A stretch of DNA of 64,000 nt from NCBI GenBank assembly GCA_047495785.1, contig JBLDXI010000085.1:186001-250000 (forward strand). Direction: 5' to 3'. How positions within the stretch are numbered: position 1 is the first letter of the stretch; every line of letters begins with the position of its first letter. Positions 4,953-44,995 of this stretch are shown here, one piece after another. The notes beneath the pieces were generated by a model. It was given only the letters and a program-made list of their open reading frames with translations. It did no database searches and had not been told where the DNA came from. Both the position numbers and the translations under genes were made by a program. Source of the stretch: Lepidodermella squamata (lineage: Eukaryota; Animalia; Gastrotricha).

Positions 4953-6169
4953 CATTGATCTTGCAGTTATGATAAAACAACAAATCGAGTGACTATTTCC
5001 CTCATTTCCTCATTCTTTATTGACAAATAGCTGCCGATATTGATCAGTGATTAATAATGCTTCCTGAGCTTCGCTTATTATTGTGATTCGCTTATTCAAA
5101 TTATTTGGATTCGCTCAGAAAAATATATTTTTGCTTGTATAAATAGTAACACCTATTTTCTCAGGTATGAAGTAAATCATCGCTTAAGCCTAAAATTTAA
5201 ACCTTTCGATCATTTTTGTTCTGAGAGCTAACAGTTAAGAGAACTTGAAAGGGCTCTTTTACGATCCAACGGTCTTTTTGGTATTTTTGGTCAACAGCCT
5301 CTCATGCAAAAGGGCATCTTACCAGTCAAAAGATATGTGTAGACCTGGGATGCACCAAGCAACGACATACAACTATTCATCTTTTGTTTAGCCTAGATTT
5401 CAAGACCATGGCTAGCATCTGTGCGTAAAGCAGTGGATGGTGAAGAAGATGCAGCAGCGTCCCAAAACAACCAAGCTAAGATTAATTTTACGTTTGCTTT
5501 GAGTTGAAATGATGCAAAGACTGAGTACTCCCAGAAGAGATCCATTTGAGACCAGCCAAGAGCCAAGAAAATAGGAAGACTGTAGGGATACGCGGCTGAG
5601 TCTGAGTCAAGGAGCTGTGTGAAAATGCATCAGGCAGTTTTTCAAATCCCGCAGCCTGTACAGATTTTTTTATTCTTATAGATTTTACCGCAAAGCACCA
5701 ACATACCCGAACAACACCGAACAAAAATTCAGACCAAACTTTTGGCGTTGTTCCGGTGTTAAAACATGGAAGCGGAAAACCTTCGGACAAACCGATTTCA
5801 CCCCTTTGTTCGGCATAGCAAAAATGCCGGTCTGGGTAGCGATGAATCATTTTTACGTCGCCAAATGTTAGTTGCCAGGGCGACGTTGGTTAGCCACGTT
5901 GTTAGGGCGTCACTATGAATAAAAATATGGAAAATTCACCAGAATGTGCAGCTCAAGAAGTTAATAAATGATATTTTCTGATTACGTCGTGAATTCACAG
6001 AAAAATTTATCAGACTCAAGAATGCTGTTCTAGAAAAAACTCCAAAAAACTGGATGTTGCAAAATTACCTTGGGTACAGGAAAATTACCTTAGATGCTTG
6101 TTTTCCGACTCGCATGTATGCGACTCGATTGGCGCTGAAAATACCGTCGCAATGATGTAGCGTGGGTTT

Positions 6170-6538
6170 TAGCTTTAATAATTTTGCAGCTTCAGGAGAG
6201 GTTGATTGTCATATTCCGTCCTGTTTCTAGTCATTTCAACATGAATGAAGGTCCAATTGATACTGGGATACTGGGATCAAGCTAAAAGCCTCAGCAGTTC
6301 CTTCTTTGCTTTCCAAGCTCAGGATGATAATTTATTTTCAGACACTATAACTGATCAACCCGTTGTTCGATGCTACAAGACATCGAATGGTAACTTCAAA
6401 ACGTTAGATTCCGTTTGCCGCAATGACGAATTCCAGGTACAGAAAACCTCCAAATTTGTCAATATTATAAAAAAATAATTGTGATTTCAGAATGGCCCAA
6501 CGTATTTCTTCAAAAATCTGGCTGTTTTTTTTAAATGA
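6170..6538 (+). pseudogene. Orphan degenerate astacin-tail exons (repeats 3-4)
   Basis: TITDQPVVRCYKTSNGNFKTLDSVCRNDEFQ | NGPTYFFKNLAVFFK-stop is homologous to the repeat 4 exons, with Cys losses and a premature stop. Confidence 0.75.
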
Positions 6539-7267
6539 GTAGCACATTCCACGATAATTAATGGCATGTTCCACAGATTTTTTCTAATTTCAAATAAACA
6601 TCGAGAAAACATTAACGCGTTAAAACTGAAAAAGGTCTTGAATAGTCGACAAATTTTCGTTCAGGCTTTGATACGCTGTGGTTTTGGAATCAAACTGATG
6701 CCGAAGTGATAATGAACAAATTGTCAGGAAACCAGGACATTTTTCGGTTCGATAAATACAGATGAATAATATAAATTATGGTGGAAGAGCTTTGATGCAT
6801 TGAATAAGCGGGAAATGATGAAATCAATTTTTAAAATTGAGCGTATTCATTACCAGCTAGGGGACCCTTTAAATGCCCTGCCCTTACTATTATCCTTTTT
6901 TCATGACGTTGACCTAATAATCGGTCCGTTTTAGTTATCCTTAAACCGGTCTGGTTTGGACAACTTAAACTGTTTTCAACAAAAAGGAATTAGAAAATTG
7001 TTTCAGATGAACCAGTCGTTACACGTGGCTGACTTGTCCGTTATGGTTTGATCGCCAACCTTCAGGATCTAGTAACGTATGTCGGACGCACATAACGTTA
7101 GTAAACCACAAGGGTTGACGAAAAACCATAACGGACTTGCACTGTGTAATCGGACTCGTTGATTGATGGCTTCATCAGGTGACTGCAAAGCACGCGCTTT
7201 TTTACGTGAAGCATACCAAAAGCCTGCGCTTTTTTTTATTCAATTTAATTTAATTTTATTTGTAGAA

Positions 7268-10200
7268 ATGAAGCAGTTGATTGTTGCCACCCTGCTTTTC
7301 AGTTTTATAACAAATTCGCAAGGAATTGTGAGTGGCTATATTATCTATTAATTCTTCTCAATTTATAAGCGCATGTTTTGCAGGATCCGGAGCTTGAAGA
7401 TGTTCTATGGCAATTGAACGATGCGATTCTTGCAAATCATGGGCTTCCACCGGTAAATTTACGTAGTATCGCTGTTAAATGTTAAATGACTATTATATTC
7501 TAGGATGATCGTAGTGTCCCACTGAAGCTATGCGGTGTTCCGGATCTGGAAACTGCGCAAGCAAAACTGAGGCGACAACTGGCAATCGCAGATGGCGAAC
7601 CATTTGTGGCCGGGGTGAAAACAAATGCCAAACTATGGGAATTCCCTATCTACTATAAAATCAATGAATCTCCGCCATACAGTTAGTTGAACGGTTGTTT
7701 AATGGCCTCGGTTTTTCTAGGTTTAGGTTTGAGGTTAATGTTAAGGTTGTGAGTTCGGGCATTGAGGAAGGCGATCGAAAAGTCACCCGCCCCTCAACTG
7801 AATCTTGCTTTATTTATCTGAACCAAATATTAGAGACCGATTTACAAGATTTAAAACAATGAAATATATTTCTCTATGAATCAACGAAGTTTTTTGGACT
7901 AACAAATTCGACATTTTCGCTTTTCGAGACATTTCGAATCGAATTGGCTGAAATGGCTTCATTTTTTGGTCTTCAATATTCAAATTTACGACCTCTAACC
8001 ACTGATATTTATTCGGAGTAGATAGCTTTTTCGGGCAGTACGGTACCTTTTAACAAATTATCCACGTTGAAATGTCGGTTTTTTTCATTGCAGCCGCCGA
8101 TGAGCAAGTAATCATCCGTGCAGGTATGGATCGTTGGGAGGAGCTAACATGTGCCCGATTTATCGAAATTCCCAATCTTGCGGCGGATCAGAGCGGTTTA
8201 AATATCGTTAAAGGATCAGGGTGAGCAATTTTCTTAAATTATTCATAGAATTATGTCTCGCGGCCGTTTTGAAGGTGCTTGTCGTTTATTGGGAGAATCG
8301 GGGAATCGGGGAAACGACAAGACTTGACTCTGGGAGGCGGTTGCATGGCGGTATCTATCAATTTCTTGCAAATTTGCTCTTTCAATGAACGCAACGATCT
8401 TTCAGGTATTCATTGTAGCTCACGAAATCGGCCACGCTTTGGGAATGGTTTGATTTATTGATTATTCAAATACCAAGGTCTTATCCTGTATGTTTTACAG
8501 GAACACGAGCATTCAAGGGCGGATCGAGATGACTACATCCGCGTCAATTACGAGAACATTATGGCGTAAATTCTTTTGAAAATTCAAATTTTCAGTCATA
8601 ATTGATATATTTTTGCATTTTAGTGGCAACGCTTACGCATTTGATATCGAACTGAACGATGAGAATTACAATGTGTCGTACAATTATGATTCTGTCATGC
8701 ACTACGGATGGGACGCTTTTGCAAAGTCGAACGTGCGAACCATAGAAACAATTGATAAGCGATACATGTACACGATTAATCAGATGAATTACATCTCTTT
8801 CGGAGATGCGAAAAGAATTAATATTCGATATAATTGTGGTAAGTTAAATTGCACCAAAAAATGCATAAAAATATTTGATCATTTGGCTGTTAAGTTCAAA
8901 CCCCCAAATTGAATATTTTTCCCTTTAAATGAAGAAATCTGAGGAAAAGGTATTTATTTTCTAATTTTCATCTTAAATTCAGTAACTATTTGTTTCTTAA
9001 ATTTTTTAAATAATGTTGGAACTTCCCAAAATTTGCTATTGATAATTTCGAATTTTTAAATTGAGGATAATTCTCTTATTCGATTTCGTTCACGTTAACT
9101 TCCGAAATCTCCGTTTTTAGTCGAAACTTCATGCAACAGCAAGCCTTTACCTCAGCCATGCCAAAATGGTGGCTATCAGAGCCCGAATAACTGCTCGAAG
9201 TGCCTCTGCCCAGATGGTCTAGGTGGCGATTTCTGTGAGTCCTACGCTCCATACAAAGGCCCAGTTCCATGCGGCGGCTACGTCGATGTAAAAGCTTGCA
9301 GCTACACTTTGATCACCTCGCCTGGCCACCCAAACATCTACGACAAGAATACGGCTTGTAATTGGTGGATAAGAGCGGTAATTGTTGCATCAGAGTTTAA
9401 TCAATTAATCTACGCCATCATTTTACCCAGCCCGTTGGAACTGGATTAGTTTTCGCCATCGAGAAGACACCCAATCTTCCTAACGATAATTACTGTAAGA
9501 TACTGTTGGGCACTTGCCGGCATATTCTGACTGTTTTTCTATTCTAGATCAGACGAGTTGCGGAGATTACGTTTCGATTCGTGATTACAGCAGTATTGAA
9601 AAATCAGCAATGAGGTTCTTAAATCAGTCATTGGTTAGTTTAATTCATCAATTTTTTCCAGGTTTTGCAGTGACAGCATTTCCAATGGTCGAGTGTATTC
9701 AACTGACGACAATCAAGCAATAGTCACATTCGCAACTCAAGGCTTCTCGAGTACCAGCACAGGGTTCAATTTGACCATTTACGCTACGTGCCCGGGTACA
9801 ACAGCCACTACGCTCACAAAGGAGTGTCGAATTACCGAGAGCGGTCGCGATTATGAAGGAACGAACGTTACTGCGTCTTCGTTGGGGGAAGCTTGCACTT
9901 CATGGTCCAGCAAGTCAAACGTGAAAGATTTGCAACTTCCAATGGGTGATGTCAACGCGTCGGCGAGTGCATGCCGTGCGTTCAACAGTGGGGATAAGCC
10001 TGTTTGCTATGTCGCCGATGGTTCTTATAAGCCATGCGCACTAGTCGATAAATGCCCAGCAAGTGAGTTCATAGCTTTCAAGAGCGCCTTATGTATACTA
10101 ATAGTAGTACGAATTCTTTTCTTATCCCTACTGAACATTTTGGCGATTTTGAAAGGTTTGGCCAACAACATTACAGAGGTGCCTCAGAGGGCCTATTGGC

Positions 10201-13200
10201 AAAACAAAAATCTGATTTAAAAAATGGCTTTCCAAACTTAAATTCCAACCAGCCTCTTGTGATTGGAGACTGGTTTCCAGTTATTTTGCAGCAGTAATTC
10301 TCAAAAGCCTTACTACTTAGTTTTCTGATTTTTATTTCTGTGGAATCGTTTTTCGAACTATTACTTTGTTTCTTTCCGGAAAAAGTTTCGTGTACGAGTG
10401 CGTGCCAGAACGGTGGAACATGTGTTGGTATAGAAGTTTGCAACTGCCCAGCTGGTTGGACCGACATAAGCTGCACAACTCGTAGGTTTTCAATCAACTT
10501 TTCAATTAGCCTTCCTAGTATTGGAATTTTCCTTTTAAATTTACAGCTATTGCAAATGATCCAGATGATGATGGGGGCACAGAAATTCCAACGAAATATG
10601 CCCGATGCTTCTTGAGGAGCACGGACGATTACTCTACTTGCCGTGTTGCAACGGCTAATGGCTGCCGAGAGTTCGAGTACCCAGTAAAAAACCATGCTAG
10701 GACATTAATTTGGTTCGTTTCGGCAGCTTTGCGCTGAGCATGAATGGTTAAGTCGGTTGAAATCACTACCCCTTGAAATTCCCCTCCTAGTCATCTTGGA
10801 GGGGAATTTTTTCCCCCCTCCCCAATATTCTCTCAACAATGGCAGCAACCGGGATCGATGTCCCAATAACTCTATCTACGTCGTCTGACTTGATTAACTG
10901 GCTATCTGGGCTAACCGCGGCGGCGCACACTTTAATTACCCTCATTTCATTATTCGCAAGTAATAACTTGATGTGAGCTAAAATCGGGGGAACAGGCTCA
11001 TAACTAAATTTGAAACATGGTGAAAAATCAAAAAAATTAGTTTTCAAAATAAACATGAGCAAAAATTACGGGCGCCTGATCGGCGGGAAATCGAATGTCA
11101 AATATCAGTTTTTGGTCAATTGCGGCGTCAAACTTTATTGTTTTGACAAATAAACACTCGAATGAAAGCCTGAATAACACAGGCTATCGAATGATATGCG
11201 ATACTTGAGTGAAACTTGATTTTATGCAAGCGCGGCCCCGTTCAAATTTTGACCTTAGCAAAGGGTGTGCTGTCAAATGGGTGCGCCTTGTCAACATGAG
11301 ACATTTACCGTTCGATAGAGCTCCTCGAATTACCCATTTCTCATGAAAATTCGCCACTGAACTCGCATTTGAATATGACCCAGAACTGCAGAAGCGATAT
11401 TTCGAAATTGATAGGGCTTGTTTTTTATCTCAAATTTTACCGCGAGGCTTACAGGCAAAAAACGGCAGCTGATATCGGCTTGCGGTTTTCACCCGTGTAT
11501 AGCCCGTGAAATGTTGTACTAGAAATGGCTAATAGATTACGCCCGGTCGCTTCTACACCGTCGCGGAAAAATTCACAAAAACGTCGAAATCTCGAAATAT
11601 TAAGTTTTAAGCTGGATCAAAACAAAGGTTCTACCGCGCCTCCTATAGGCAAACAACTACGAGGGCTACGAAGATGGGCTTAGTCTTGTTCGGTTCGTCT
11701 TGAAATTCTACGTCGGCCTGTGTAACGTGTTTGTGCGCACAGAACTGCTGCATGTGTTTCAAATTTGACAGAAAGTGCGTGTGAGTGCGTGTGTGAGCGC
11801 CGCCGCGCGCTAAAAATAGGCTGAAAAACGCGATTTGCCGCGCTTCTTATTCCTCGACAACCACGAGGGCTGCAAAGACGAGCTTGGTCTCTAAAAATTC
11901 AGCGGAACATTTGCTACATTCTAAGTGCATTAAAACACGAGCGCTACCAGGATGAGGTGTCAAAAAAATTGACGATACTCCAAAAAATTGAAATTTTAAT
12001 TTTCACTGAAAATCAATCGCGCGCAAATCGCTATAGTCAAAGGAAATCTTGCGAAACTTACCTGGAACTATTACCTGGAATTAAGCTAAAACCAGGTGAA
12101 CGGACTTGGGCTTGAAGTTGAGCTGAACCGTGATCGAAAAATATAAAAATTATTTTCTAATGTCAAATTTCCAGCAAAATTTCACGGCGTCACATTACAA
12201 GTCATTTTCAAGTCAAAAAATCATTTTTTTGTCAATTTTTTTGTCTAAATTTGACAAATAACCGCTTCAAAGGTGCAGCAAGTATTTCAAGCTATTGAAT
12301 GATATACGATACGTACATGAATCTCATTTGCATGTAGGCGCAGCTCCGATAAAATTTGACCTTAACAAAGGGTGTGCTGCCCACATTGTGCGGCCCATGA
12401 ACATGGGGCATATTCCATTCGATAGGCCGCCTCGAGTTACCTATTTGTCATAAAAATTCGTCACTACAATTTCAGATAAAAATGACCCGGAATTGGTAAA
12501 GCAAAATTTCAAAATTTACTTGGTCTGTTTTTTATCTCAAATTATACCGCGTGCGTTATTGGCAAAAAGCCATGAGGGGTATTGACATGCGGTTTTCACC
12601 ATAAAATAGCCCGCAAAATGTTGTAGTAGATATGGCTATTATATTACGCCGAGACGCTTCTACACCGTCGCGGAAAAATTCACAAAAATTTCGAAATTCT
12701 CAAGTTTTAAGGTGGGTCGAAACAAATTATACCGCGCTTCATAGGCAGAAAACTATGAGGGCTACGACGATGGGCGTAGTTTCGTTCGATTCCTCGCATT
12801 TTTCTGCACATGATGGTTGCAACTAACTTTTGCGCACAAATATTGCATACCAGTCAAAAATGCAAGTGAGAAAGCCTAACTGCGTGAGTGTGCACACTAA
12901 AAATATGGACAACCAAGTTTTACCGCGCAGCGAATAACACCATAACTACGGCGGCTACAACGACCAGCCTGGTCTCAAAATTCTTAGCTAAACATGCTCT
13001 ACGCGTTAGAATCATTAATATATCAGCGCAAATTCGGTGAATGAAAAAATGCGAGTGCAAAGTTGGTCAACAAAATTATGAAAATTGGACTTGACAAAGG
13101 GTGTGGCGTCAAATGGGTGCGTCCTGTGAATGTGGGGCTTGGACCAGTTCAAGGCGCGCCTTGAGTTACCTATTTCTCATGAATATTCGAAATTGAAGTC

Positions 13201-16200
13201 GCAGTTAAATTACACCTAGAATTAAATAATCGTAATTTGAAAATTTACTCGCTTTGGTTTTTATCTCATATTATACCGCGTGGCCTATTGGCAAAAAACT
13301 GTGATAGGTGTTGGCATGCGGTTTTCACCTCTCGAAAGCCCGTCATATTCTGTACCTGACATGGTTATTTTATTAAACCGGGACTATTCCTAATCGTCGT
13401 GAAATGATTCTCAAAAACGTCGAAATTTCGAAATTTTAAGGTGGATCGGCCGCGCCTCCTATAGACAAAAAACTATGAGGGCTACGACGATGATCTTAGG
13501 CTTGTTCGACTCGTCTTGAAATTTTACGTCGACAAGTGTTATTTTGATATGCGCACAGAACTGCTGCATGTGTCCAAAATTTGACAGAAACCGACTCTGA
13601 GTGAGTGTGTGAGCGCCGCCGCGCGCTAAAAATAGGCTGAAAAACGCGATTTACCGCGCCTCCTATAGCTCCAAAACCATAAGGGCTACGATAGCGCGGT
13701 TGGTCTCTAAAAATTCAGCGCAAAATTTGCTACATTCTACGTGCATTCAAATATGAGCGCTACCAGGTTGAGCTGTCAAAAAAATTGACGAAAGTCGAAA
13801 AAATTGAAATTTTAATTTTCACTAAAAATCAATCGCGCGCCAAACGCTATATTCAGATGAAATCTTGCGAATCTCGCGGCGGTTTTGGTACCAAAAAATC
13901 GGCCGTCTTTTTTAGTATCTAAAAATCCGACTTTGTCACGACAAATTCCGCACCTATCTGGGTGTCATCCGCGCACTGAACATTTCACACACCGTCAGTG
14001 AGGGCCATTTTTTCATGTACGCGCAACTTGTAAATTCGATATAAAATCAACCGTTTATCGCCTAGCACCAAAATTTAGACTGTTCGATGCAGAATTTTTC
14101 GTAGAATGTCACTGATGCAGCCCTCCCCCCAGGGAGGGCCGCCAAACTGGTTTTATATTGACATTTCGAAAAGGCGCATCGCAACGACCCGGCTCTCGCG
14201 TGTGAGGTAATTAACCTCGGTCATGAGGGTGCCGGTAACCGTGACCCAGACGGCGGCGTAAGCAGCTCATGAATATTAATGAGCAGTGGAGCAGTTTTTT
14301 ATGAATAAAAAATCGTCAAAAATCAGCCGATCGATGAAACTTGCTAAAAAGACTTTTCCCAAAACTTCAAAACAAAATCTTTCTACGACTTATTTTTCCG
14401 TATTTTTATCGTTAAAATTCGTTTCCCTAGCTTCGTTTTTCGTCCAGCGCAAAACGCCTCTACCATTGTCGCCTCGACCGGCGAAGCTGAGAGAGAGGCG
14501 CTGGACCTCCGGTTCAGGCTGCGGCTCCGCCGCTAGGGGAACCCTATCGGGTTGGTTCGCGCAATCATCTAGAAAAACGGGGCACCAGCTGCCGGTTGCC
14601 GCAAAAATTTTCAAAATCGGATTATTTTTGGTGAAGTTATTGATGAAATAGGATCGGCATTTATTTATTTCCCCCACCCTCCAAACCGGAGTTAAATATC
14701 TTGTTTTTTAAGAAAGATAACTGATGCCTCCCTCCCCCGGGGGAGGGAGGCAGCCGGTAATTCATAAAAAGTTTTTAACGGCATATAAAAAGTTTCGAGC
14801 GCCACTACCAGTTGCGCTATTAGCGCTGCCACGGAGCGCGTGAGTTAACAATAGAGCGCCGGTGATTACGCAAGAGGTTTCGTGTGCGCGCGCGAGAGCG
14901 CGCGGCAGTGGCGACCGGCTCCGGTGACCTAGCGCCGTTAGGTCAAGGTAGTTACGCAATTGCGTAATAAATAATGCGATTTTTTCGTTTTTAATTTTTA
15001 AAAAATCAGCAATTGATGCGGCAAAAATGGAAAGTTTCTACCCGCCACTTGAAAGCCTGCCCGATTTTTCGGTATTTTTAGATTTTCTACATGTATCACA
15101 GGAATTTCCCTAGCAAGGTATTCCAAAGCGGCCATAACCCCTTCTGCATCAGCAGTCGCTGATGCGCCGTACTCTGTCGCTTATTGGGGACTTCGTCCCT
15201 GTGGGACCTTTGGTGCGCAACCATCAAGTAGGACTAACCATTTTGGAATTTCTTGAATATAAAAAAAAAACATTTAAAAAATAAAGAGTCGGACTTTTTC
15301 AAGCTATCAGTCTTGCGAGAGAGGCGTAAGTCATTGCTTTGAATGCTACTACATATGAGTAACAGCTGTGCTAACTACATAGGCTGTGAGTTACTGCTAC
15401 TCGCTCGAAACTGCCGATTTCACTTGCCGTCTTGGTGACTGCAAAAGCGGCGAACAAAGGGTAGAGTTTCATTGCTAAATACTTCTTAAATAATTCGATT
15501 GATTTTAGATCAAAATCTTCTCCAGCTCGCGATTTTTCGCAGCTCAGAATTTAATGGAATGCCGTAATCTGGCTTCACCGGTACCAAATGGTTTCTTATA
15601 TAATTTTATAACCCAAGAATTTTTCCAGATGAAACACTACCGCTGCTTCAACTCGAATATCACGAAAATGACTTGCCGACTAACAAAGACCTGCATGCCA
15701 GGAGAGGTTGGTTTGAATAGTCTTAGTCTATATTTGATTTCTTTGGAATAGAAACGACGCGGTTGGTTTATGGATCGAGCTAGTTGCCTAAACAGTGAGC
15801 AAAAGATTGCTTCCCAAGCATAGAAATAGCAAAATTCAATTTCAGATACATTCGCCGACCAGCCTGTTGTTCGCTGCTACAAGAAAACGAATGGAAAATT
15901 CGAAACATGCCGAGCTGTATGCCAAGAAGATGAGTCCCAGGTAAAAATAATTTCTACAACTTTTCGAAATTACCAACATTTTTTATGATTTCAGAATGGC
16001 CCGGCGTATTTTTTCAAAAATCTGGCTGTTTGTCTTAAAGGGGTACGAATAATTTGCTGCATACGTTTCCATTAACCGTTTCGAAATGTTGAAATATCAG
16101 GGTGCCAGGCTGTGTGAGCGTAACCGCCACCAAAAGTACTGCGCTGGTTCGAATAGATCTTGCAAGAAACAGGTAAGCGTTATGATTCAACCATGTTCTT

Positions 16201-16896: not shown

Positions 16897-19800
16897 GGGT
16901 GTGTTGGTACTTCCGCGCGGCTAAATCCGCACGGTAAACATCCGCACAAAAATTTTCCACACAAGGTATTTGCACACATGGTGTTTCCGCGCACTCTGTT
17001 TATTTATTAGATTACGGTTAACATGCACGAAAAAAATCAGTCAAAATCAGTCAAAATTAAATCAATCGTCGAGCTCAATCGGCAAATAGAAATTGACCTC
17101 GTCATTATCACCGGCATCAGTCTCGTGGTGGCCGTTGTAGAACTCAGCAACTTTCACCTCCTGAGGAAAGACTAAGGCTATGTCGGTCATGTTGGCGGCG
17201 CACGCGTCCAGGAAGTCCATGAATCCGATCTTGCCCGCATCGAGATCCTCCCAGAGCCGTTGCATTGAGGCGTTGAGTCGCTGGAATTTTTTGCTTGACC
17301 TGGTTTTGTACGTTCTCGCATCGACTCGAGCCCAGTCGCGACGGGTGATGGCTTCTTCCCGGATTAGCAAAGCTGAAAATCGCCAAATATTGAGGTGGAC
17401 TTTCTTCGCAATTTTGCTGATACGGGAGTTCCACCCTAGAGTGACAAAGTGGAAATAAATAAGCATTAATTATACACAAAATACTCACCTTCTACAATGT
17501 TATTCGTTCTGATGTCCCGGCGATGCACATTCCAAATAGCAAGATCAAGCGTATTAAGCCAAAAGTTTTCGAAATAAGTAAGGAATTCGACTAGCTTAAC
17601 ATTATCCGGCGTAGCCTTAACTTCAGAGAAAATGGCAGCAAATGCCGGGCGAACCATGTCGACAGGTAGCAGAGGTAAACACATAACACGTCTCACCGTC
17701 TTACGCACAAAGCCGCTCGGGTTTAGATAGGCAATTTTCAACCCATGAGCGCAAACCCATTTGAATAGGGCCTGTTTAAAGTGAAATAGACAACCAATGA
17801 TTGCAACATGATGGAAAACAATCCTAATAGCCCGCAATAGTCCACTTTCGAAATCACAGGTTATTTCACGCAAGCGAGGAGGATGGCCAAGAATAGAGGT
17901 AATTTCCCTCTTCAAATATAGCAAGACGTTTTCATAAAGGCGCGAATACTTATTAGACATGAGAACATAAGCACAGGGTAAAATAGCGCCATTTATCAAG
18001 GCATGAATAGTAAACAATTGATAAAATAAATCATTTGGCACAATTGAGAAGGTCCCATCAACGAACCAGCTCGAGCTCGACCCGTCGTCGCATTTCAGCC
18101 CGCGTGACTTCAGCAGCAACAACCTCATAGTTCGGCAGATCTGTGTGGTAATTCTTGACGCCAGCAAAGTTGCCATCGCAATCGAGAAGGAGGAGGGCCG
18201 AGCAGTGCGCTTGGGACTAATACTGTATGGACTCGACACTAGCCACTTTTCTGCTGGACAGGAAAAAAATCAATAATTTTGATGCGAGAAAATCACATGA
18301 AAAAATGTGTTTTTTTACGCATTAAAGGCACCATTTTTACGCATCCGCCAGTTACAAAGCCAAAAACAGGACAAGTTTCACGAGAGTACCGTATGGGCAA
18401 GTCATGCCGATGGATACAGACTGAATTTTTATGAATATCGATAGCTCAAGTCACGATCTTTGCAACAGTGCCAAATTCAAAATTTTATGACTTTGCTGTG
18501 ATTTTACTTTGAATTTTACACACAAATTGCCATTTTTGAGGAAATAAAAAAATGGCAAAAAATTATTCAATGAGTCATGAATATTCTCTCGCATTTTTTT
18601 CTGAATAAATAAATAAATAATTCGGTTCTATTTTTAAAAATTTTTGCTCATTCTGGTAGAAACATCAATTTAGCTAAGTAAATTCATCAGCCAGTAGGTC
18701 ATGGTTTATAACGTTACAAAGGTCCTCTCATGTAGAATTCGGCTATGTAAAATTAATTGCAATCCGAAATAAAGGTAAGGTGTGATACGGTACCGACGGG
18801 ACGAGACTTCGATTCTTCCCAATGTGATGGGTGCATGCGTAAAAAAGGTTCTCATAAAACGTCATTTTGCGATTTTTTTCTCGCGATTTTTGAACGACTT
18901 TACGATCACGATTCTTCGGACGGTTTTTTGCGTCCAGCAGGATTTTAATGGAGAGATACTAGCAGTGTCGAGTCCATACAGTATTAGTCCCAAGGCAGTG
19001 CGAGCATCGCCACGCGTTACGGCCGAGTACGAAACGGTAGACATAACCACGGCATCCAATAGAAGGCGTGCCCTTCGTATTCGCGAAGCGGTAGACGTTT
19101 CGATCGAAAGGCAACTCTTTCCTTTTCTGCTGAAAATGCATAAGAAAGGATATATAAAATTCCCAAAAAAATAATTGAAATTTAAATTTAAAATTCAGAT
19201 TGGATTTAATGATTAAAATTATCAATTTTCAATTTCTAAAATCAAGGTAAAAATTCTGAAAAATCTTATTACATCTAAATTCTGGTCGGCTGCTGTAGCG
19301 TTTGCTTTCTGCTCGGTAACTTGGGGTAAGTTTTCGTAGGGAGTAGCTGGCAACTTCTCGGATCGCAACGTTTGTGGACGAGGAGGTAAAGGCGGCGGTC
19401 TCGCGGGTAACAGTGGCGGGCTTTGATCTTCTAACTGAGGCGGGGGTGTTTCCGGCTCACGAGGCGGCGGCGTGGGCGGTAACGAAACAGTCGTCATGTC
19501 TCGCAAAACCGGTTGAACGGGATCAGTCATTTTTGGACCTAGATAATGAGAACAAGAATTTGGGAAAAAACCCATTTTCACGTTTTTACACACCATTTTC
19601 CGCGGTCTTCCTCGGCCGCGCTCGATTGGAGGTGATAGCTCAGGTTGAAAAATCAGGCAATATCTCAGTTGTAGCTGCCGTTATTGGTTCGGCTATCGCT
19701 ATTACTACAAAAAGTTCAGTAAATAAAAAATCACATGTTTTATTTGTCTATTTTTCTCGCTAGAATGTACGATTTTACTACTTATCAGATTCAAAAAAGA

Positions 19801-20652
19801 ATAGACAATACAGTTTCATTTACCAATTTTTTTCGGTCGACCTCGGCCTCTCTTCATTTGGCTACCTGCCCCATCGATGACTGGTTGAATTTCAGCCACT
19901 GGCTCGATAACGGCTTGATCAACTCCGCCTTCTCGGTAGCGGGCGCGAGTAAGCCGGACCGGTTCCATCGTAGGCTGTATTGACACAGGATTAGCCATCG
20001 GCGAAGGAGGCTTAGGCGCACCTTTGATCAAAATCTTGAACTAACATACAAAAACATTTTTAAATCATCTATAAATTAGTTCAAACGTTACTTTGGTTGG
20101 ATTTTTCGGAGGATTTTTCGGCGTTCCAGGTATTAACACCGGTTCAGCGAGTTTCGGGCACTAAATCTCCTCGACCTCTCGCACCCGCTCTTCAAAGCAG
20201 GATTGGCACCGTTTCATGTCCACACAATCCCCTCTGGGATTTTTGCAATTAATGCAATTCTCGACGTTGAAGCGACCCATGCATTTGTCGAGCTCCGCCG
20301 CCAGCTCGTTAACTCGGTCCAAGTTGTCCGACTTTTTACCGGTTTTTTTCATGGTGAAAGTACGACAATAATTATTATTTATGACAAAAGTTGCTAAATA
20401 ATGCTCTGATATTATGAACTGCTTTATTTCTCTTTTTATATGCTTTTTCTGCTCTCTGATCGGCTCATCCAAAGTTTTTTTTTCAATCTGTCTTTCTTTC
20501 TTGAAGTTCCCTCATTTCCTAAAAATTCAGTGAAACTTGAATCCGAGTGAGAACAGTTGTCGGATAATTAAAGTCACATTTTAGGATGTCGGATGAAATA
20601 AGACATTTGTCTGATAAAAGAAGACATATGTCTGATGAAAAAAGTCACACCC
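16897..20652 (-). mobile_element. Decayed Mutator/MULE DNA transposon with a multi-exon AT-hook + FLYWCH-like + MULE transposase gene
   Basis: MULE DDE motifs WFVDGTF..FYQLFTIH..PCAYVLM..ITCDFE..GCLFHFKQA..RTNNIVE|GWNSR (17062-18075, one intron). FLYWCH-like KG..GYVY..WRCSHC..H. Two RGRGRP[KR]K AT-hooks near 19610 and 19835. Contains a stop, a frameshift, an internal deletion and a MITE insertion. The ends are tentative: GGGTGTG at 16897 and CACACCC at 20646-20652, each with subterminal short repeats, no TSD. Confidence 0.8.
18210..18994. mobile_element. MITE / non-autonomous DNA transposon with 31-bp perfect TIR and 8-bp TSD, inserted in the MULE gene
   Basis: TIR CTTGGGACTAATACTGTATGGACTCGACACT at 18210, inverse ending at 18994. 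TSD GCAGTGCG at 18202-18209 and 18995-19002. Confidence 0.92.
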
Positions 20653-21031
20653 ATATAAATATATGTGGCGAGAAGGCTTGATAGGATTTTTCGTCATTGC
20701 AGCAAGCTCACGATCTGTCGAAATCAATAGAGCGATCTAATTCCGATTACAATTATTGGCGATCGGGTCGCGATTTTAAAAGTTCAGGTATAAAGTATGG
20801 TGTATTCGGAAAGGAAAAAAGAAACATCAATATGATGAACTCAAAGAAAAAATTTCGTTGATTTATTAGAATCTGTCTATGATGCAATAGCGGCCTGTTC
20901 AGTTTGTTTATTCTTGATTAATTATGTTTGTTGATTTTCGACGATGGGCAGAGCCGAAAGTCTTAGCACGGCTGAAAAACACGCATTTATCAGTTGGCTA
21001 TGAAGGATGAGGTTGAAGTCTTACTAGTCTG

Positions 21032-21314
21032 CTATTCTGTGTGCTGATTGTCATGCGACATCGCCACTTCGTGCGTCTCTTCCATCGCTTTCCTGTCCGG
21101 GAAACAATAGTATATCGAGCCGGTCTGCCTGCATGTGCTATTGATTACAATGATGGCTTGATTTTAGGGAATGTTCAAAATTAGAAACTCACTATCCAGC
21201 GCAGCAAGGCAGACTTATGCCACACTCCCCAATCGCGCACCTCGACTTACTCGGCATCGCAGTAACTGCTGCGAAAACAGCGAAAATGGCAATAATACAG
21301 AAGGCAGCTTTCAT
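21032..21314 (-). CDS. Secreted inhibitor-cystine-knot (knottin)-like peptide precursor, 75 aa, 2 exons (21314-21193, 21137-21032)
   Basis: MKAAFCIIAIFAVFAAVTA-MPSKSR-CAIGECGISLPCCAGYTCRQTGSIYYCFPD-RK-AMEETHEVAMSHDNQHTE. The 55-nt phase-2 intron has a GTGAGT donor and TAG acceptor. C-C-CC-C-C framework. AATAAA lies about 120 nt downstream (20907-20912 on the minus strand). Confidence 0.85.
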
Positions 21315-22363
21315 TTCGAGAGAATTTGCTATTGGTTTAAAACGTGATGGCTTTAAATGTCTTTTCCTGGCGTTATGTAGGCTTTAATAGGCCTTATCAC
21401 TTTCTCACGCGCACCAATTTTAAGGGCTATCTGTCCTAAATAGGTCATAAGCCCCCCCAAAAATGATTAATTTCAGACATTTGTTGCCTTTATCTTTGAT
21501 AAAAATGTATTTTTGGGCGTCACCCTGGTAAGTCAAAAAAGACGAAAGACGAAAGAAGCAGCTTTCATTGTTAGGTGAGATAAGTTATCAATAACTAAAG
21601 AAAGGGTACCGTAAAAGGGTACGTTTAAAAGTAATCGCTTTGTTCATTCCTCGAGAGTGCGTTTTATTAAATACCTTATCTTACCAGGTCAAATGGCAAT
21701 TTTTTGTTACCCATGATCATAAAATCACCAGAAACTAAGCTTTCAGTGCAGCGTTCAGTGTGCGAAGTACCGAGAGCGGGGAGTACGGGTGGTACCTTAT
21801 ACCCTGGTCCTGCATCCTGGGATGAAAACCTGTAAAAAACCACAGGGGACCCACTGGTCAGATAAATTCGGGGGTGAAAATACGAAAATACCCACATAGT
21901 GACGCCGAAATTGCGTCGCAAGATAAAAATCTAACAATAGAGCAGCCTGCAGGAATAGGTCTTACAAGCTGAATTTTTGTATTCGAGGGTGGTTTGGTAA
22001 ATGAGGACAGTAGGCGAAAAATGAGAGCCGGTTTTGCTGCAGGAATGGCAAGTTCTGATATTCAGATTTTTCTTGAGACGCAATTTCGGCGTCACAATGC
22101 TCCACATCGAGGTTCCTACTTCATCGACTGGCAGCGTCCACTCAGCGAGCCTCGTTGATCAATCAGAACAACCCTTGCCCAACCGTGTCCTATAGTACAC
22201 GCTCTACCAAGTAAGCCGAAGATCGAAGGTTCGATGCGCCCTTGTTCGACGTTTTGCGATCAGTTGTAATTGTTTTGATTTTGAACAAAATTTTCCCTGA
22301 CCAAGGGATCTTTAGATCTCGTGAGATCTTCAGCCTGACGCTCTCCCAACTGAGCTTTCTGAC

Positions 22364-22661: not shown

Positions 22662-23636
22662 ATAGAGCCCATGATACGGCTAGTTTCTCGGAAAAATCAC
22701 ATAATAAGCCCCGCTTCGCCTCGTCTTATTATGTGAGTTTTTCCTCGAAACTGGCCTCCTCTAGGGCTCTATCTATACACAATAACATAATAAAAATGAT
22801 AAGCATAATAAGAAACAGCTTATTTAAGGGGGATTTTTTAATTTTTACAGTGAGCACCGAAGGTGCGAAAACCTTGCCCCGCCGTGAAACGCGAGCGCAG
22901 CGAGCATCACGGGGCAAGTTTTTCGTCCGAGCGAAGCGAGGAGACGCTGATTTGATCGAGCCAAGCGAGAAAAAGCACTTAAAACTTCCAGCGAAGCGAG
23001 ATCACTTTTCTTGAAGGTTTTCAGCGTAAAGGTTGATTTTTAAGGTATTTTTAAGGTTGATTTTTAAATACGAGTGAAGTTTGTTGAATGCCAGAAATCC
23101 AGAATCGAACCAGTCATTTTTCTGCGGAATTGAATCGAAATCGAAAACTGAGGAATCGCAAATCCACGTTTTACGGCGGATCTTTTGATTGACCATTCGG
23201 ACTACACAGAAACGTTGAAGATTGCTAACCAGTAGACGAGCCATTAGTCGCATCAGTTCTTCATTAGTTCTTCATTAGTCGCATCTAACTGATTCCGGCC
23301 TTGAGACCGGTTCCAAGCAGAGGCTTCTGTGTAGTTTCTGTGTACTCCGAATGGTCAATCAAAAGATCCACCATAAAACGTGGATTTCCGATTCTTCAGT
23401 TTTCAATTTTGATTTTTAAAAGTCGCATTTCACTCCGAAAATCACCTATTATGTCACATTTTTCCATTTATATTGCAGTTTTATCGGGAACGGTTACCGC
23501 TTCGCCTTGAGTATAATGTCTGATAAGGCCCATGGTACGGCTAGTTCCTCGGAAAAATCGCATAAATCGCATAATACTTCGCCTCGCCTTATTATGCGAG
23601 TTTTTCCATCGAAACTAGCCTTCCCTATGGCCTTAT
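22662..23636. repeat. Two direct copies of a ~110-bp imperfect palindrome (22662-22772, 23523-23636) flanking GAGCGAAGCGAG-type motifs
   Basis: Stems ATAGAGCCC..GGGCTCTAT and ATAAGGCC..GGCCTTAT; both loops contain CTTCGCCTCG. Confidence 0.75.
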
Positions 23637-24384
23637 AAATACATAACCTAAATAAAAAAATCAGACAATGATGGGGTAATCCCTGTTACCATGGGGCGCC
23701 TTCGGTCGTTAGGTCGAGATTGTTCCATCATTTTTAATGAATTCGAAGTACAAACAGCGCCGAACAAAAGCCTTTGGCCATTCAAGGTTGAGGTCTGAAA
23801 TACCAGCATTTGTTCGTCAGTGTATAAACTCTGAAAATAACTCAAACTCAAACTAGAATTTGCTTTCAAGGAATTCTGATGAAGAAGCCGAACGATTTCG
23901 TTTGCGTGGACTTTGGACATGTTTTGTTTTATTATTAACCGGGTAAAAAACATATAATCAAACTCAGGCAACGTTTAACGTGTTGAATTGATCTGAAAAA
24001 CGATCGCAATCTAATTTCGATGAAAGGTCGCGATTTTATGGTGTAAAGTTAGTAATAAACCGAATAATTGACACGATCCACAATCTGAATAATCAGATCT
24101 TCAGGAATTGTATGTAAATTTTCAATCACGTCGACGAATCAGCAACAATTTTCAGTTGTTAATTCCTTAGTTAGATTTTCACGCTAATTTTTGGTAGATT
24201 AGAAAATGGATAAATTGCACTTTTTAGCCTTAAATCAGACTCATTTATCGTGCCCCTTAATTTAACTTCATTGATCGGTCTCATGAGCAGGTCACTGGCG
24301 GCACGCGTTTGGTTCCACGTTAAAAACCGAAAAAATGACCTTACACATTTATTTCATTGAATTTATTTTATTTTTTCATCATCA

Positions 24385-27300
24385 ATGAAACGGATACTAG
24401 CCCTCGTACTACTTGTTAGCTTCATAGCAAATTCCCTAGGGATAGTAAGTACTCTCTACTTGCTGTTACCTATCAACAACCATTTGGTTTCCAGGACCCG
24501 GAGCTTGAAGATGTACTCAGGCAATTGAGTGATGCGATTCGTGCCAATAACGGTCTGCCACCGGTAATTTCTCGAGAAAAATTCAAAATTGAAATGGCTT
24601 TCATTTTATTTTCAAGGCTGGCCATAGCGTCCCACTTAAGCTGTGCGGCATTCCAGATCTGAAAACCGCGAAAGCAAAGCTGAGGCGACAGCGAGGCGAT
24701 GCTGATGCTGAACCATTTCTGGCCGGTGTGAACTCGAAAGCCAATTTATGGACTTTTCCCATCCGATACAAACTCGAAAATACATACAGTCAGTTTAACA
24801 GTCATCTTCACTTTTTTCCATCTTGTCCTTATATAAGACTATTACAGCGGTTTTCAATTTTTTAGGTCCTATTTTGAGCTTAATTATCCTTTCATCGAAT
24901 ATTTTTCCATATTTTTCCGAATTTTTTGTTTATTTACTTTATTTACTATCATCGGTGAGGCAGCAAAAGTCAAATTTGTTATCATTTTATTTTCCACTTT
25001 AATCCGGATTTTTAAATAAATAAAAAAATAGGTGCCGATCAAAAAGCAATCATCCGCGCCGGTCTTGATCGCTGGGAACAGCTTACATGTGCCCGCTTTG
25101 TCGAAGATCCCAATCTGTCGAAAAATAAGACTGGCCTCAATGTCTTCAAAGGATCTGGGTGCGTCAATTTCTCATATTATTTTCTTGACCGAATAAACAT
25201 CTTGACTAATTCTTAGGTGCTGGTCTTGGATTGGGATGGTGAACGATGGACAACTGCAAGATGTGTCTCTGAGTGACAGCTGCATGGAGGTATCTATCGC
25301 TTCCTTCTTGAGCTGTGTTTCCATTTGAAAGCATCAACCATATAGGAAATCACTGTAGCTCATGAATTCGGCCACGCTCTGGGAATGGTTTAGTTTCTTT
25401 GCTATTAAAATACCAAGGTCCTAACCTCAATGTTTTCAGGAACACGAGCAATCGAGAACAGATCGCGATAACTATGTCCGAATTAACTATAAAAATATTA
25501 TTCCGTAAGTTTTGATAAAAGCTATGTTAAAAACCGGCGTAATGACTAACATCTGGTGTTTCATTTCAGTGGCTATGAATACAACTTCGACATTGCCCTG
25601 AACGATGAGAATTACAATGTGCCTTATACCTACGATTCAATCATGCACTATGCATGGGACAGTTTCGCCAGCACCCAAGGCGTGCGAACCATCGAGCCGT
25701 ATGATAAGCGATTCCTATTCACTCTTCATCAGCATAACTACATCGCTTTCGGAGATGCGAAAAGGATTAACATACGGTATAATTGCGGTAAGTGTATTTC
25801 ATTTTCCGGCTTCATTTTACGAATATTTATTATTATTTTTCAATTATTTTTTTTAGTTAATTTTTTTATTAATTTTTTAATCGTAAGTAATTAATTCGTC
25901 ACACTTTATTTTGTTCGAACTTCCAACAAATTTGATGATTGTTATTTCGAATTTTTTTAAATTGATGATAATTCTTAGCTTTGGTATTCTTCCAAGTTAA
26001 CTTCCCAATTAACTGCTTTCAGTCGAAACGTCATGCGATGGCAAGCCTCTACCGCAACCTTGTCAGAACGGAGGCTATCAGAATCCGAATGACTGTTCCA
26101 AGTGCCTATGCCCAGATGGTCTAGGTGGCGATTACTGTCAGACCTACGGCCCATACAAAGGCCCCGTTCGATGCGGCGGTTACATCGATATAAAACCTTG
26201 CGGCTACAATTCGATCACCTCACCTGGTTACCCGAAACAGTACAACAAAGATTCGGCTTGCAACTGGTGGATTAGAGCGGTAAATTCTCTATACATTGTG
26301 TCGACCTCTTAACCTATAAGTTTATACTTTCAGCCTGCTGGATCTGGTTTGGTCTTCGCCTATGAAAAAACACCCGAGCTTCCGATCGATAGATTCAGTA
26401 AGAAGAAGATAGGAAAATATTCTTATATTATCTGAGTGTTTCCAGATGGGAAAAGTTGCGGAGATTACGTTTCAATACGTGACTTGAGCAATGTCGATAG
26501 ATCAGCAATGAGGTTTTTGATTTTTTCTCGGGTTTGTTGGTGCGATGTCGCTTTATTTTCCACAGATTTTGCACCGCGAGCGTTTCCAATGGTCGCATGT
26601 ACTCAACCAACGACAATCAAGCCATTGTCACATTCGGAACTCAAGGCTCCTCGCGAGGCAATATCGGGTTCAATTTGACCATCTACGCAACTTGCCCGGG
26701 TACAACGGCCAGCTCGCTAACCAAGGAGTGCCGGATAACGGAGAGCGGCCGTGACTATGAAGGCCTGGGTGTTACTGTGTCTTTGACGGGTCAATCCTGC
26801 ATGCCGTGGTCTAGCAGATCGAATGTGAAAGACCTGCGACTTCCAATGGGCGATGTTGCTGCGTCCGGGAAAGCTTGCCGTGCTTTCAATAACGAGGACA
26901 GGCCTGTGTGTTATGTTGCCTCAAACGCATATAGCCCCTGCCGACTCGTCCCCAAATGCCCAACTAGTAAGTGTTTTACAGCCGCAATTTAGGGCTTATT
27001 TTCCTAATCACAATTCTCGGAAAATCAGCTTGCTCGTGAAAGCTAGTAGGGTGCCCAAAAGCTTAACTTGATATAGAAAAGGGTGGTTTTTCTAGTTTGG
27101 TTACACAGCCTACATTGATTGGACACCGATCCTACAAAGAAACCTCTTTCCATCCCTGGCAGCTCAAAGAATCACACCCTTGGTTTAAGGTTCTCCAACC
27201 TATCTCATATATTTCTTGGTTGCCTTGGGTACAAACCAGCAATAGACTAGCGTTATCGGTTCTCCCTGTCTCTCATGCCAAACTTAGCAACTCCTTTTTT

Positions 27301-28601
27301 CATCAAGCTTTCTGTAGCAATGCGTGCCAGAACGGTGGGAAATGTGTTGGCGTGGAGGTTTGCAGTTGTCCAACTGGATGGACCGGCAAAACCTGCACAA
27401 CTCGTTCGATTGCACTCTTCGATTTTCCAATCTCAACGCCGTATGCCAGATGCTTTCTGAAAAGCACTGGCGATCTATCGACTTGTCGGTTGGCCGAGAG
27501 CTGCCGAGAGTTCGAGTACTCGGTTGCGTAACTTCAAAAATTGTGATATTATCGATTTGAAAAATGTGAATTTTCATTCAAGGACGGTCGAATTTTTTCA
27601 AGTTACCAATCTTGCGAGAGAGGCGTGAGTAATTGGTTGTTGTTTCTTATATAATAATTGCCTGCTTTTTACAACAGGCTGTAAGCTACTGCTTTTCACC
27701 CGGAACTGCCGAGTTCAACTGCCGATTTGGAGATTGCAAAAATGATGAAAAACGGGTAAAATCCTAGTTTTATTTCAGAATTTGATGTAATTCGGGCCTC
27801 TTTGTATTTCAGATAAAAATCTTCTCCAACTCTCGATTTTTCGTTGCTGAGAATTTGATGGAATGCCGCAATCTGGCTTTCCCGGTAAAATATTTCCCGA
27901 TTTAATGAAACTCGTCGAACCCTTTTTATCACCAGATGAAATACTATCGGTGGTCCAGCTCGAATTTCACGAAAATCGCATGCCGACCCACGAGAGGCCA
28001 TAAACATGGAGAGGTTGGTTCCGATTCAAGTTCAATGTTCTTGCTCACGTTTCCCTTGCAGGTCCTAAACGGCGTTTACTCAGATCGGGCTGGTTGCCTC
28101 GCCAGTATGCAAGGATCCAGATTTTCCAGATCTGAATGACTTTTTATTTTCAGATACGATCGCTGACCAGCCTGTGGTTCGTTGCTACAAGAAATCGAAT
28201 GGCAACTTCGAAACATGCCGACCTGTTTGCTCGAATGACGAATTCCCGGTAAAATTTCGCTAAATTTCCCGCAGTTTAATTAAAGTTGATGCAAATTTTA
28301 GAACGAGCCAAAGTATATCTTCAAAAACTTGGCTATTTGTCTGAGAGGGGTAAGATTTTCGTGCAGTATTATCTGTTAACCTCCCGAATTTTCGATTTAT
28401 AGGGGGCCCGGCTGTGTAGTCGTAATCGCAACCAGAAATATTGCACGGGGTCGAACAGATCGTGCAAGAAACAAGTAAATCCAAAATAATTCTATGATAT
28501 TCTCATATTTTGCATTTATTTATGTGTGATAGATCAAGATTTTCGGATCATCGGAGCTGTTTGCCGACAATCTTGCAGCATGCAAAGCAGCCAATAATTG
28601 A
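24385..28601 (+). CDS. Astacin metalloprotease A4 (22 exons; exons 13 and 14 fused)
   Basis: Signal MKRILALVLLVSFIANSLG; LCGIPD; HEFGHALGM|EHEQSRTDRD; YDSIMHY; EGF-CUB-kringle-EGF-five repeats; frame open to TGA at 28599-28601. Confidence 0.88.
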
Positions 28602-29464: not shown

Positions 29465-31731
29465 TCATAGCGTTTTCTGGCAAATGACATTATTCATGGG
29501 ATCAGCACAATTTTTCGTGACAAAGTAAAAGTCAGTTTTCGGGTAGCCATTTTCTGCAAAGAAAACCTGCATTACAACGCAAGTTTCGTAGGCTGCTTCC
29601 TTCGACCATTGAACAGCGACATAAGGTACAGTCGAACCATCGTCCGCTATCAAAATGCCATTCTGATAGTGGAGACCGACCCAGGGCGAGGCTGCACGTC
29701 CCACAGCCAGCGCTTGCCTCACCTCATCCAGATCTGCGTCCGACTTGACCAGGGCAATTGTGGCACCAAAATTACCACAGGCCGCATTGGCTTTGGATTT
29801 GACGCCGAATGCGTCGATTGTGAAGTACTGCCGTCTCGGAGCCATGCAGCTGGTTTCGTCCGGATAAATGACATCAGGCGGCAGTCGACCTTCCCAGGTA
29901 TTTTCGCATTTGCCTAAAGCGGTATTCACGCATCGAGCCGTAATGTTACTGAAGCGAACACAACGGATAAAACCAGGCTGTAAAAAAATCGAAACTTCAT
30001 CGATAGTAATTCAGGTCTGTAAAACAACGAAAATAAATTAGATTTATTGGCCAAATTTGAGTTGTCGATCTCTTAAATTCGATTGTTTGAATCGATAATT
30101 GCAAAATAACAGAAAACTCCGATTAGACTTTAGACCTAAAGAGCTTTCAGATTAAGATTTTAGATCAAAATTTCGGCCTGCTAAAATAGAATGGCTCTAC
30201 GCCATGGAAGGAAAATCGGATATTTTGCTCGCACGCTATAGAGCGGTTTCTCATTCATCGATTGATAGCTTTATCGATATTGGCAAAAATAATTACTTTA
30301 TTTTATGTAAGTTCGTTTTGCTGGCCTGAAAAGGCGAGCGTAAATAAAACTCTTAAAACTTTGATATAAATACACTGTGAAAAACATTATAGGTAATTAT
30401 GGATGCGAACTCACCGCTAGGGTTGGCGGTAGATTCGCACGGCATTCGTCGTGGTTCTGTTGGAAGGTCGGCTTTTCGATGTACGATTGACCCTAAAATT
30501 GGCAGAATAATAATTAGAGAAAAAATCGAGGCCGCTGGCTGAGAGTTACCTCAGTTAGATCATTAGGACAATCTGCGTAGCAGGATTCCAAAAACGACTT
30601 GGCCACGCATGAATGGGCATCCTGTTCAAAATGTATGATAACGGCGAGAAGTGCAATTTTTTAATAACTTACTCCTACGAGGCAAGTTTCCTTATCGGCA
30701 AATGGGGTGCTCGAAAACATCTGGGTTTCCGTGCCAGCGTTGCAGCCAGGGCTCTGTGGTCGGCAGGCGTTGAATTTGCCGGTTGTCGAATCGAAGCATC
30801 GAACGTGAGGCGTTTTGACTGGAACTGTGACTGGGAAAAGCATGAAACGAAGATTCAGAAAGTGTTGGTGCATGGGGAAATTTACAAACCCGTTGCATTG
30901 ATACAAGACGCAAGATTTTGAAACAGAGTTGTTCCATTTGCCTAGAAATAACCAAGAATTAGATTTGAAGAAGCGAACAAGTTTTAAACATCTAACCAAG
31001 TTGTTCGGGCAGCCGAACGGAACTGGCACACAGGTCTCCGTGCTGTTGCTAGTTGTGCATTGCCTGAATTGCAAATTCTAAAAAAAACATGAAATATAAC
31101 ATGAATTTTTTTTAATTTTTCCGAATTATTACATTGAAGGCAGCTCTCTTCTTCTCGCAGTCGTTGAGGTTGGGTCGCAAGTTCATAACGGGGTTGGGAT
31201 TACCAAACCAGAACAACTGAAAATTATGGAAAAAAATGATTAGGGGGCAACAATTTTCCTATAATTTCAAGGTTTCAAATTGTCATAGTTTTTTAGAAAG
31301 TAGATAATTCGGAAATTAAAACAACTCACAGCCATTTCGTTAGGTTTGTTACAACCGATGTTTGCGGGCACGCAATATGGGGTCCGCGTCTTGTAATTGT
31401 AGCACATGAGACCATTCTATTAGAAAAAAATTAGAGCACGATAGATAATAGCTGAAAAAACTCACCCCACGGTGGCAAACGCCTACTCTAAGGAACGACC
31501 GGCCCAACTATTGATCGATAGATTACCAAGGTGTTTGAAAAACGTGAATTCGACGAAAACCTGATAATCGGTGCGGTTATTGCAGCCGTCGGCGGCTCCA
31601 ACGCAGTCAGTGAATTTGTTTGTGGATTGGGAGAAGCATCGAACCCAGTTCACCGGCTTCTTCTTACAAGCCACTTCGCTACATGCCAGTATCAAAGCCA
31701 ACAACAATACGGCGTTGAAATAACCAATCAT
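29465..31731 (-). CDS. Secreted six-repeat + C-type-lectin-like protein L1 (10 exons, divergent paralogue)
   Basis: Signal MIGYFNAVLLLALILACSEVAC; repeats such as WVRCFSQSTNKFTDCVGAADGCNNRTDYQ|LGRSFLRVGVCHRG; CTLD ANAACGNFGATIA..PWVGL..DDGS..TCVVM..KNCADPMNNVICQK. Same 10-exon structure as L2, L3 and L6. Confidence 0.85.
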
Positions 31732-44782: not shown

Positions 44783-44995
44783 TAAATAAATCAGGTTAAA
44801 CATGACCCACTTGTTTTTCTGTATTTCTTGGCGGTTATTAAGGAGGCTCGTATTTATTTGATTCCATAAATAGAAATACGTGACTCCTGAAAAAGGTCAT
44901 TTTTAATTCGGACGCAACGATCGCGTGCCATTTTAGTTCCGTTCGGATATTTTTTAAAAGCCTTCATTCGAGTTTTTTTCAACATCATATTAAAC

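Follow-up and report, generated by a model that had tools for sequence, protein, structure and literature searches.

The minus strand at positions 21032 to 21314 of the window (the whole 64,000-nucleotide stretch of DNA that was analysed) raises the question of whether a small gene for a secreted, Cys-rich peptide lies there and, if so, what kind of peptide it makes. A first-pass annotation had read the locus as a knottin-type peptide gene, with a venom-type ion-channel neurotoxin as its leading idea. Gene finders and ORF tracks routinely overlook small secreted peptides rich in disulfides, many of which are lineage-restricted. Overall, the locus is best explained, with a probability of roughly 0.55, as a predicted lineage-restricted (orphan), single-copy, two-exon gene for the 75-residue secretory precursor of a disulfide-rich peptide. 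The candidate is well formed; it is not a demonstrated toxin.

A predicted two-exon gene for a secretory precursor

The candidate gene has two coding exons on the minus strand, and its 75-residue precursor is counted across the following pieces.

21314..21193, minus strand: exon 1, an ATG ORF of 40 codons plus two bases, TA
21258..21314, minus strand: predicted signal peptide, codons 1-19, with MK as n-region, a hydrophobic core of 15 residues and V-T-A ahead of the probable cleavage point
21250..21245, minus strand: alternative GTAAGT donor, phase 1, within exon 1
21240..21257, minus strand: predicted pro-region, six codons ending in K-S-R, with putative cleavage at the Arg
21193..21239, minus strand: Cys-rich core, part 1, with Cys I-IV (C-x4-C-x5-CC), two further residues and two bases of a split Tyr codon
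21192..21187, minus strand: donor GTGAGT, overlapped by the TAG stop of the exon-1 ORF
21192..21138, minus strand: putative intron of 55 nt, phase 2, GTGAGT...AATAG, between Cys IV and Cys V
21137..21032, minus strand: exon 2, whose first base, C, completes the split Tyr codon, followed by 34 codons (21136..21035) and TAG
21095..21137, minus strand: Cys-rich core, part 2, the last Tyr base and then 14 codons with Cys V and VI (x-C-x8-C-x3)
21089..21094, minus strand: dibasic R-K, putative processing site
21032..21088, minus strand: acidic, His-rich C-terminal tail, 18 codons plus TAG
21034..21032, minus strand: TAG stop of exon 2

The first-pass annotation had proposed this two-exon, 75-aa model together with its coordinates, and all of the positions and residues are present in the sequence. 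The same is true of the pro-region ending in Arg, the RK pair and the acidic tail that it described, and of the internal GTAAGT donor that it had pointed out. Its signal peptide also stands, in that the 15-residue hydrophobic core passes the crude signal test defined below. The six-Cys framework C-x4-C-x5-CC-x4-C-x8-C is read across the two exons as had been claimed, but only under the proposed splice, which gives a core of 30 residues. This core contains one Arg, one Glu and one Asp, for a net charge of about -1, and its C-terminal half is aromatic. The signal cleavage site was placed by the -3/-1 rule.

In the ER, the signal peptide would be removed after residue 19 and the six Cys would form three disulfides, giving a compact, protease-resistant core. 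The simplest disulfide pattern would be the sequential I-IV, II-V, III-VI of knottins; the three disulfides, this pattern and the knot are all predicted from the Cys array alone. Convertase-type cuts, predicted from the sequence at K-S-R and R-K, may free the ~30-residue core, and the released peptide would then act extracellularly through binding a target. If the gene is real, the odds that its product has a knotted fold are about even.

Proposed splice sites and neighbouring introns

The proposed acceptor, which ends the intron at 21138, is the only local one with an open frame. The next two AGs on the downstream side were inspected, at 21130-21129 and 21126-21125, and neither is workable because each gives a stop codon with the carried TA. 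The acceptor itself is AATAG with a weak pyrimidine tract, and it is the least convincing element of the gene model. The introns of a neighbouring C-type-lectin gene, which were found by eye and preserve the frame, measure 55, 59 and 51 nt (59692-59746, 59961-60019, 60636-60686); the candidate intron is therefore of a length typical of its neighbours. These lectin-gene introns end in AACAG, TTTCAG and TTCCAG, as against AATAG in the candidate. One lectin-gene donor overlaps a stop codon, as the candidate donor does.

An automated short-intron finder (GT..AG pairs 40-75 nt apart, with both flanks open and coding-like) was also applied for a local splice consensus. It yielded 61 real pairs versus 69-97 decoy dinucleotide pairs, and its intron set was dropped because the decoys passed equally often.

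Putative promoter and poly(A) signals, and surrounding DNA

Three putative control motifs lie outside the coding exons.

21382..21389, minus strand: TATA-like box (TATTAAAG), 75 nt upstream of the ATG, putative promoter element
20907..20912, minus strand: AATAAA, 120 nt past the stop, putative poly(A) signal
20862..20867, minus strand: second AATAAA, 165 nt past the stop, putative poly(A) signal

The heptamer TATTAAA is also found 66 nt upstream of the ATG in two C-type-lectin genes (59392-59398 on the plus strand and 52566-52572 on the minus strand), and there are only 17 copies of it on both strands of the window. An initiator-like motif, TTCATTC or TTTCATT, lies about 30-45 nt before the ATG and is common to lectin and astacin genes. 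It was read in the 70 nt upstream of the ATGs at 59458 (plus), 52506 (minus), 63068 (plus), 31731 (minus), 24385 (plus) and 4407 (plus). In two of the lectin genes, TATTAAA lies about 34 nt further upstream of this motif. The arrangement suggests that the neighbouring genes use TATA-plus-initiator promoters with short 5' UTRs and not trans-splicing. An AATAG-like motif 14 nt upstream of the candidate ATG was considered as a trans-splice acceptor and set aside, as the neighbours show TATA-plus-initiator-like motifs and no acceptors.

The candidate locus is unique DNA. No inverted or direct repeats bracket it, and on this ground the idea that the nearby MULE transposon carries it as cargo was rejected. 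The opposite strand and the flanks contain nothing recognisable. Two palindromic MITE-like elements are found upstream of the candidate, one at 21895-22099 (arms of 33 nt, 91% complementary) and one at 23133-23414 (arms of 81 nt, also 91% complementary). Downstream there is a 103-aa ORF at 20161-20472 on the minus strand, Cys-rich in its C-terminal third and without a Pfam match. A 21-nt tandem repeat is located at 20586-20644 (2.8 copies, 81% matching), with short mirror-image ORFs on both strands.

Search for relatives

The two exons were queried separately. A tblastn check for paralogues, which the first-pass annotation had suggested, returned nothing beyond self-hits for either exon against the window. 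Neither exon matched a Pfam family at E values up to 1. Among PDB sequences, the best match of exon 1 was a plant lipid-transfer protein at E = 1.7 and exon 2 had no match, each query being part of a domain.

A word-indexed search of 5.8 billion protein clusters gave no candidate for exon 1, which was scored as residues 11-50 of a 50-residue reference (10 in-frame upstream codons were added) against proteins of at most 87 residues. Exon 2, submitted to the word-indexed search as a 43-residue reference against proteins of about 24-75 residues, gave no candidate either. With exon 1 as the query, an exhaustive HMMER search over 1.84 billion representatives found nothing at E <= 1e-3. Scans of JGI metagenome contigs and GTDB genomes with back-translated patterns of the 50-aa exon-1 reference, including the 10 upstream codons, detected no relative. 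A metagenome scan with a serine carboxypeptidase encoded elsewhere in the window was likewise blank. When public assemblies were queried for the exact products of these two ORFs, exon 1 and the carboxypeptidase, no record was returned. These blanks exclude close relatives only, because queries of 34-40 residues cannot reach distant Cys-rich kin.

Probability of a chance origin

The window contains 356 ATG ORFs that are 30 aa or longer, and only the candidate has C-C-CC in residues 16-70. A crude signal test was applied to these ORFs, requiring an uncharged 12-residue stretch near the N-terminus with at least 10 hydrophobic residues. The real window contains 9 signal-like ORFs by this test, versus a mean of 1.86 per window simulated with a Markov-1 model. 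Seven of the eight signal-like ORFs other than the candidate are first exons of Pfam-supported astacin, C-type-lectin or carboxypeptidase genes, so in this window the test mostly picks true signal exons.

Only one signal-like ORF of the window also contains C-C-CC, and 100 windows simulated with the Markov-1 model gave no such ORF. The C-C-CC pattern was present in 0.042% of simulated ORFs, and the expected number of signal-like C-C-CC ORFs is about 8e-4 per window, before a donor, an acceptor and two more Cys are demanded. About 2.7% of random AGs are followed in frame by a continuation that has two more Cys in range. The combination of features is far beyond the null model, with the caveat that the null is simple and many windows were screened.

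Codon usage was scored after training on the Pfam-supported ORFs of the window, with 1035 open frames of 35 or more codons as the reference set. At 0.167 per codon, exon 1 ranks at the 97th percentile of this set, and exon 2, at 0.107 per codon, at the 92nd; of the three frames, the proposed one scores best in both exons. Cys V and VI lie in 14 codons that reach 0.317 per codon; the C-terminal tail is about neutral (-0.04). The gene as modelled is probably real.

If there were no gene here, the locus would be a chance signal-like, Cys-rich ORF beside splice-like motifs in intergenic DNA, or the remnant of a decaying gene. It would then have to be an accident that an ORF expected about 8e-4 times per window on exon 1 alone is followed by an in-phase canonical donor, an intron of typical length and another two Cys within range. 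That codon usage is best in the proposed frame for both exons, and that TATTAAA and AATAAA stand at the expected places, would have to be accidental as well. This explanation is nonetheless consistent with the lack of any homologue, paralogue, family or structure match in the searches that were run, with the weak acceptor and with the neutral codon usage of the tail, and screening many windows means that rare chance events get selected. On the whole it is unlikely, but it deserves to be kept in view.

Possible alternative splicing of exon 1

Exon 1 could also be real and spliced differently, either from the donor at 21250 or to a distant minus-strand exon such as the ORF 20472..20161, and no six-Cys peptide would then be made. 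As a donor, GTAAGT at 21250..21245 fits the consensus better than GTGAGT does, and the 103-aa ORF with its Cys-rich C-terminus and no Pfam match is found downstream on the same strand. However, joining the 21250 donor to the 21138 acceptor would shift exon 2 to a basic frame with one Cys, and this frame scores -0.053 per codon versus 0.107 for the proposed one. It would also leave the in-frame C-C-CC behind a signal peptide as a coincidence, while the 55-nt intron of the proposed splice has the length usual nearby. Such alternative splicing therefore appears improbable, and the two-exon model with the intron at 21192..21138 is retained below.

Comparison with known C-C-CC-C-C peptides

Knottins are defined by the disulfides C1-C4, C2-C5 and C3-C6, with the third bond threading the ring made by the other two, and non-knotted sequential tri-disulfide peptides share the C-C-CC-C-C array (PMC6024828). 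The array occurs in cone-snail, spider and scorpion toxins, in plant and horseshoe-crab antimicrobials and in the mussel MgCRP-I family, which has no known function (PMC4558851). Swiss-Prot peptides with the array include insect bombyxins and one nematode insulin-like peptide, and insect viruses have been reported to carry such peptides (PMC4558851, Table 3). The array alone does not make a toxin, because it is common to insulin-like peptides and to lineage-restricted peptides of unknown function (PMC4558851). In the candidate, the C-C-CC-C-C array falls within the ~30-50 residues expected of a knottin, as a 30-residue core under the proposed splice only, and it is preceded by an N-terminal signal peptide according to the crude test (15-residue hydrophobic core).

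The ICK peptides of arachnids and cone snails resemble the candidate in having six Cys in the same order with adjacent III and IV, a core of about 30 residues, and a signal-pro-mature layout with a pro-region that ends in a basic residue (PMC6024828, PMC3694633, PMC4558851). They differ in that the candidate shows no sequence or profile similarity to them on either exon and is single-copy. The signal and pro-region of the conotoxin O-superfamily (framework VI/VII) were not recognised in the candidate, exon 1 being without a relative at E <= 1e-3, a word candidate or a Pfam match. Scorpion ICK peptides (lambda-KTx and calcines) follow the consensus CX6CX4DCCX2-4K/RCX3GX4-6CK/R, and the introns of their genes fall within the propeptide and where the mature peptide begins (PMC3694633). 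In contrast, the candidate has loops of 4 and 5 residues, no DCC, and an intron between Cys IV and V.

These comparisons bear directly on the venom-type ion-channel neurotoxin favoured in the first-pass annotation. Only the Cys framework and the pre-pro-mature layout speak for such a toxin, and both are common to cone-snail and arachnid toxins (PMC4558851, PMC3694633). Pfam and PDB-sequence searches with each exon revealed no similarity to a toxin family or a solved toxin, and the window contains a single copy and not an expanded family. The intron splits the Cys framework, unlike the scorpion ICK introns in the propeptide and at the mature-peptide start (PMC3694633), and nothing indicates that the source animal is venomous. 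A neurotoxin is thus very improbable, and an orphan precursor of a disulfide-rich peptide remains the preferred reading.

Knottin-type antimicrobials of insects and plants, such as MaK of Monochamus alternatus, share with the candidate a short secretory precursor and six Cys. In the antimicrobials, the six Cys are said to pair C1-C4, C2-C5 and C3-C6, and the peptides have a defence role in a non-venomous setting (PMC10743862). MaK has a theoretical pI of 8.29 and neither a pro-region nor a C-terminal tail (PMC10743862). The candidate, by contrast, has a core net charge of about -1 followed by R-K and the acidic tail, and no similarity to MaK was detected.

The nearest analogy in kind is MgCRP-I of Mytilus, which comprises taxonomically restricted, secreted C-C-CC-C-C peptides with a basic pro-site and a short C-terminal extension (PMC4558851). 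The pre-pro region is conserved across MgCRP-I, a multigene family with four exons, the last of which contains the whole Cys-rich region (PMC4558851). The candidate differs in being present in one copy and in having its Cys-rich region split by the intron.

Invertebrate insulin-like peptides have an A-chain with CCx[4]Cx[8]C and a B-chain with Cx[11]C (PMC8698791). An insulin-superfamily or other disulfide-bonded peptide hormone, with an A-chain-like second half and basic convertase sites, is the least credible of the alternatives: the CC-x4-C-x8-C read across the exon junction matches the A-chain framework exactly (PMC8698791), bombyxins and a nematode insulin-like peptide have C-C-CC-C-C (PMC4558851) and the precursor contains basic processing motifs, but the B-chain Cx[11]C (PMC8698791) is absent (4 residues lie between the first two Cys, and 5 between the second and CC), there is no space for a B-chain helix or connecting peptide, and neither exon matched a Pfam insulin family at E up to 1.

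Possible role of the peptide

Antimicrobial peptides are usually cationic. With its core net charge of about -1, the candidate is not of this usual type. Assigning any one named activity from the sequence would be doubtful at best, and the first-pass suggestions of an ion-channel toxin, an antimicrobial or a protease inhibitor are guesswork. The likeliest role, also a guess, is in defence or interaction, as a binder or inhibitor outside the cell, given the secreted astacins and C-type lectins nearby and the near-neutral, aromatic core. On the same footing, a membrane-disrupting cationic antimicrobial and a venom neurotoxin are both disfavoured.

A more specific reading is that a young or fast-evolving single-copy gene independently reached a knottin-type scaffold in a non-venomous, short-intron invertebrate whose lineage is poorly sampled, with the intron placed inside the knot. 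In this placement it would differ from arachnid and cone-snail toxin genes. The scenario is rather unlikely; if true, it would mean that the ICK fold arose anew here or that this is a very deep, divergent branch of it, and the neighbouring secreted proteins may be co-regulated with the candidate. If the candidate is expressed, the cluster of secreted proteases and lectins would gain an unannotated secreted peptide. The candidate would then also place the C-C-CC-C-C scaffold outside the best-known venomous groups, which bears on how often the scaffold arises or persists.

Genomic neighbourhood

The window is metazoan DNA of about 40% G+C, and the candidate lies between tandem arrays of astacin and C-type-lectin genes. 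No tRNA or Rfam matches were found in it. Arrays of genes with astacin, CUB, kringle-like and EGF domains occupy about 1-16000, 24000-28600 and 34000-38500. This family is present as several diverged copies with 72-80% DNA identity, and its kringle-like matches, at E about 2e-5, fall under the Pfam cut-off, which makes this domain assignment tentative. Within one astacin/kringle-like array, a stretch of 1431 nt is present twice, at 1-1431 and 1855-3285, with 100% identity and in direct orientation. The two copies are 1854 nt apart, and they reflect either a tandem duplication of very recent date or an artefact of the assembly.

C-type-lectin genes are located at 29465-29929 on the minus strand and in an array at about 44800-63700, in both orientations and with 76-95% mutual identity. 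Among the lectin copies, 44945-45636 matches 52559-51867 in inverted orientation, and 49120-49705 matches 56538-55957 at 95%. A MULE transposase is encoded at 17062-18239 on the minus strand in two adjacent ORFs. A perfect 31-nt inverted repeat (18210-18240 and 18964-18994) starts at the 5' end of the MULE transposase ORF.

The only well-conserved protein of the window is a CPVL-type serine carboxypeptidase at 43367-44782 on the plus strand. It is full-length and intronless, has its own signal peptide (Pfam S10, E = 2e-74), and is 36-41% identical to homologues in mites and insects, vertebrates, molluscs and rotifers. The first-pass annotation had called the genome nematode-like. The window gives no support for this: the carboxypeptidase homologues span many phyla, with no nematode among the 120 matches listed, and the neighbouring genes have TATA-plus-initiator-like promoters and no obvious trans-splice acceptor. 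The intronless carboxypeptidase gene stands among genes with many short introns, and directly upstream of it an ORF at 42029-43087 on the plus strand has a weak reverse-transcriptase match. The carboxypeptidase may be a retrogene.
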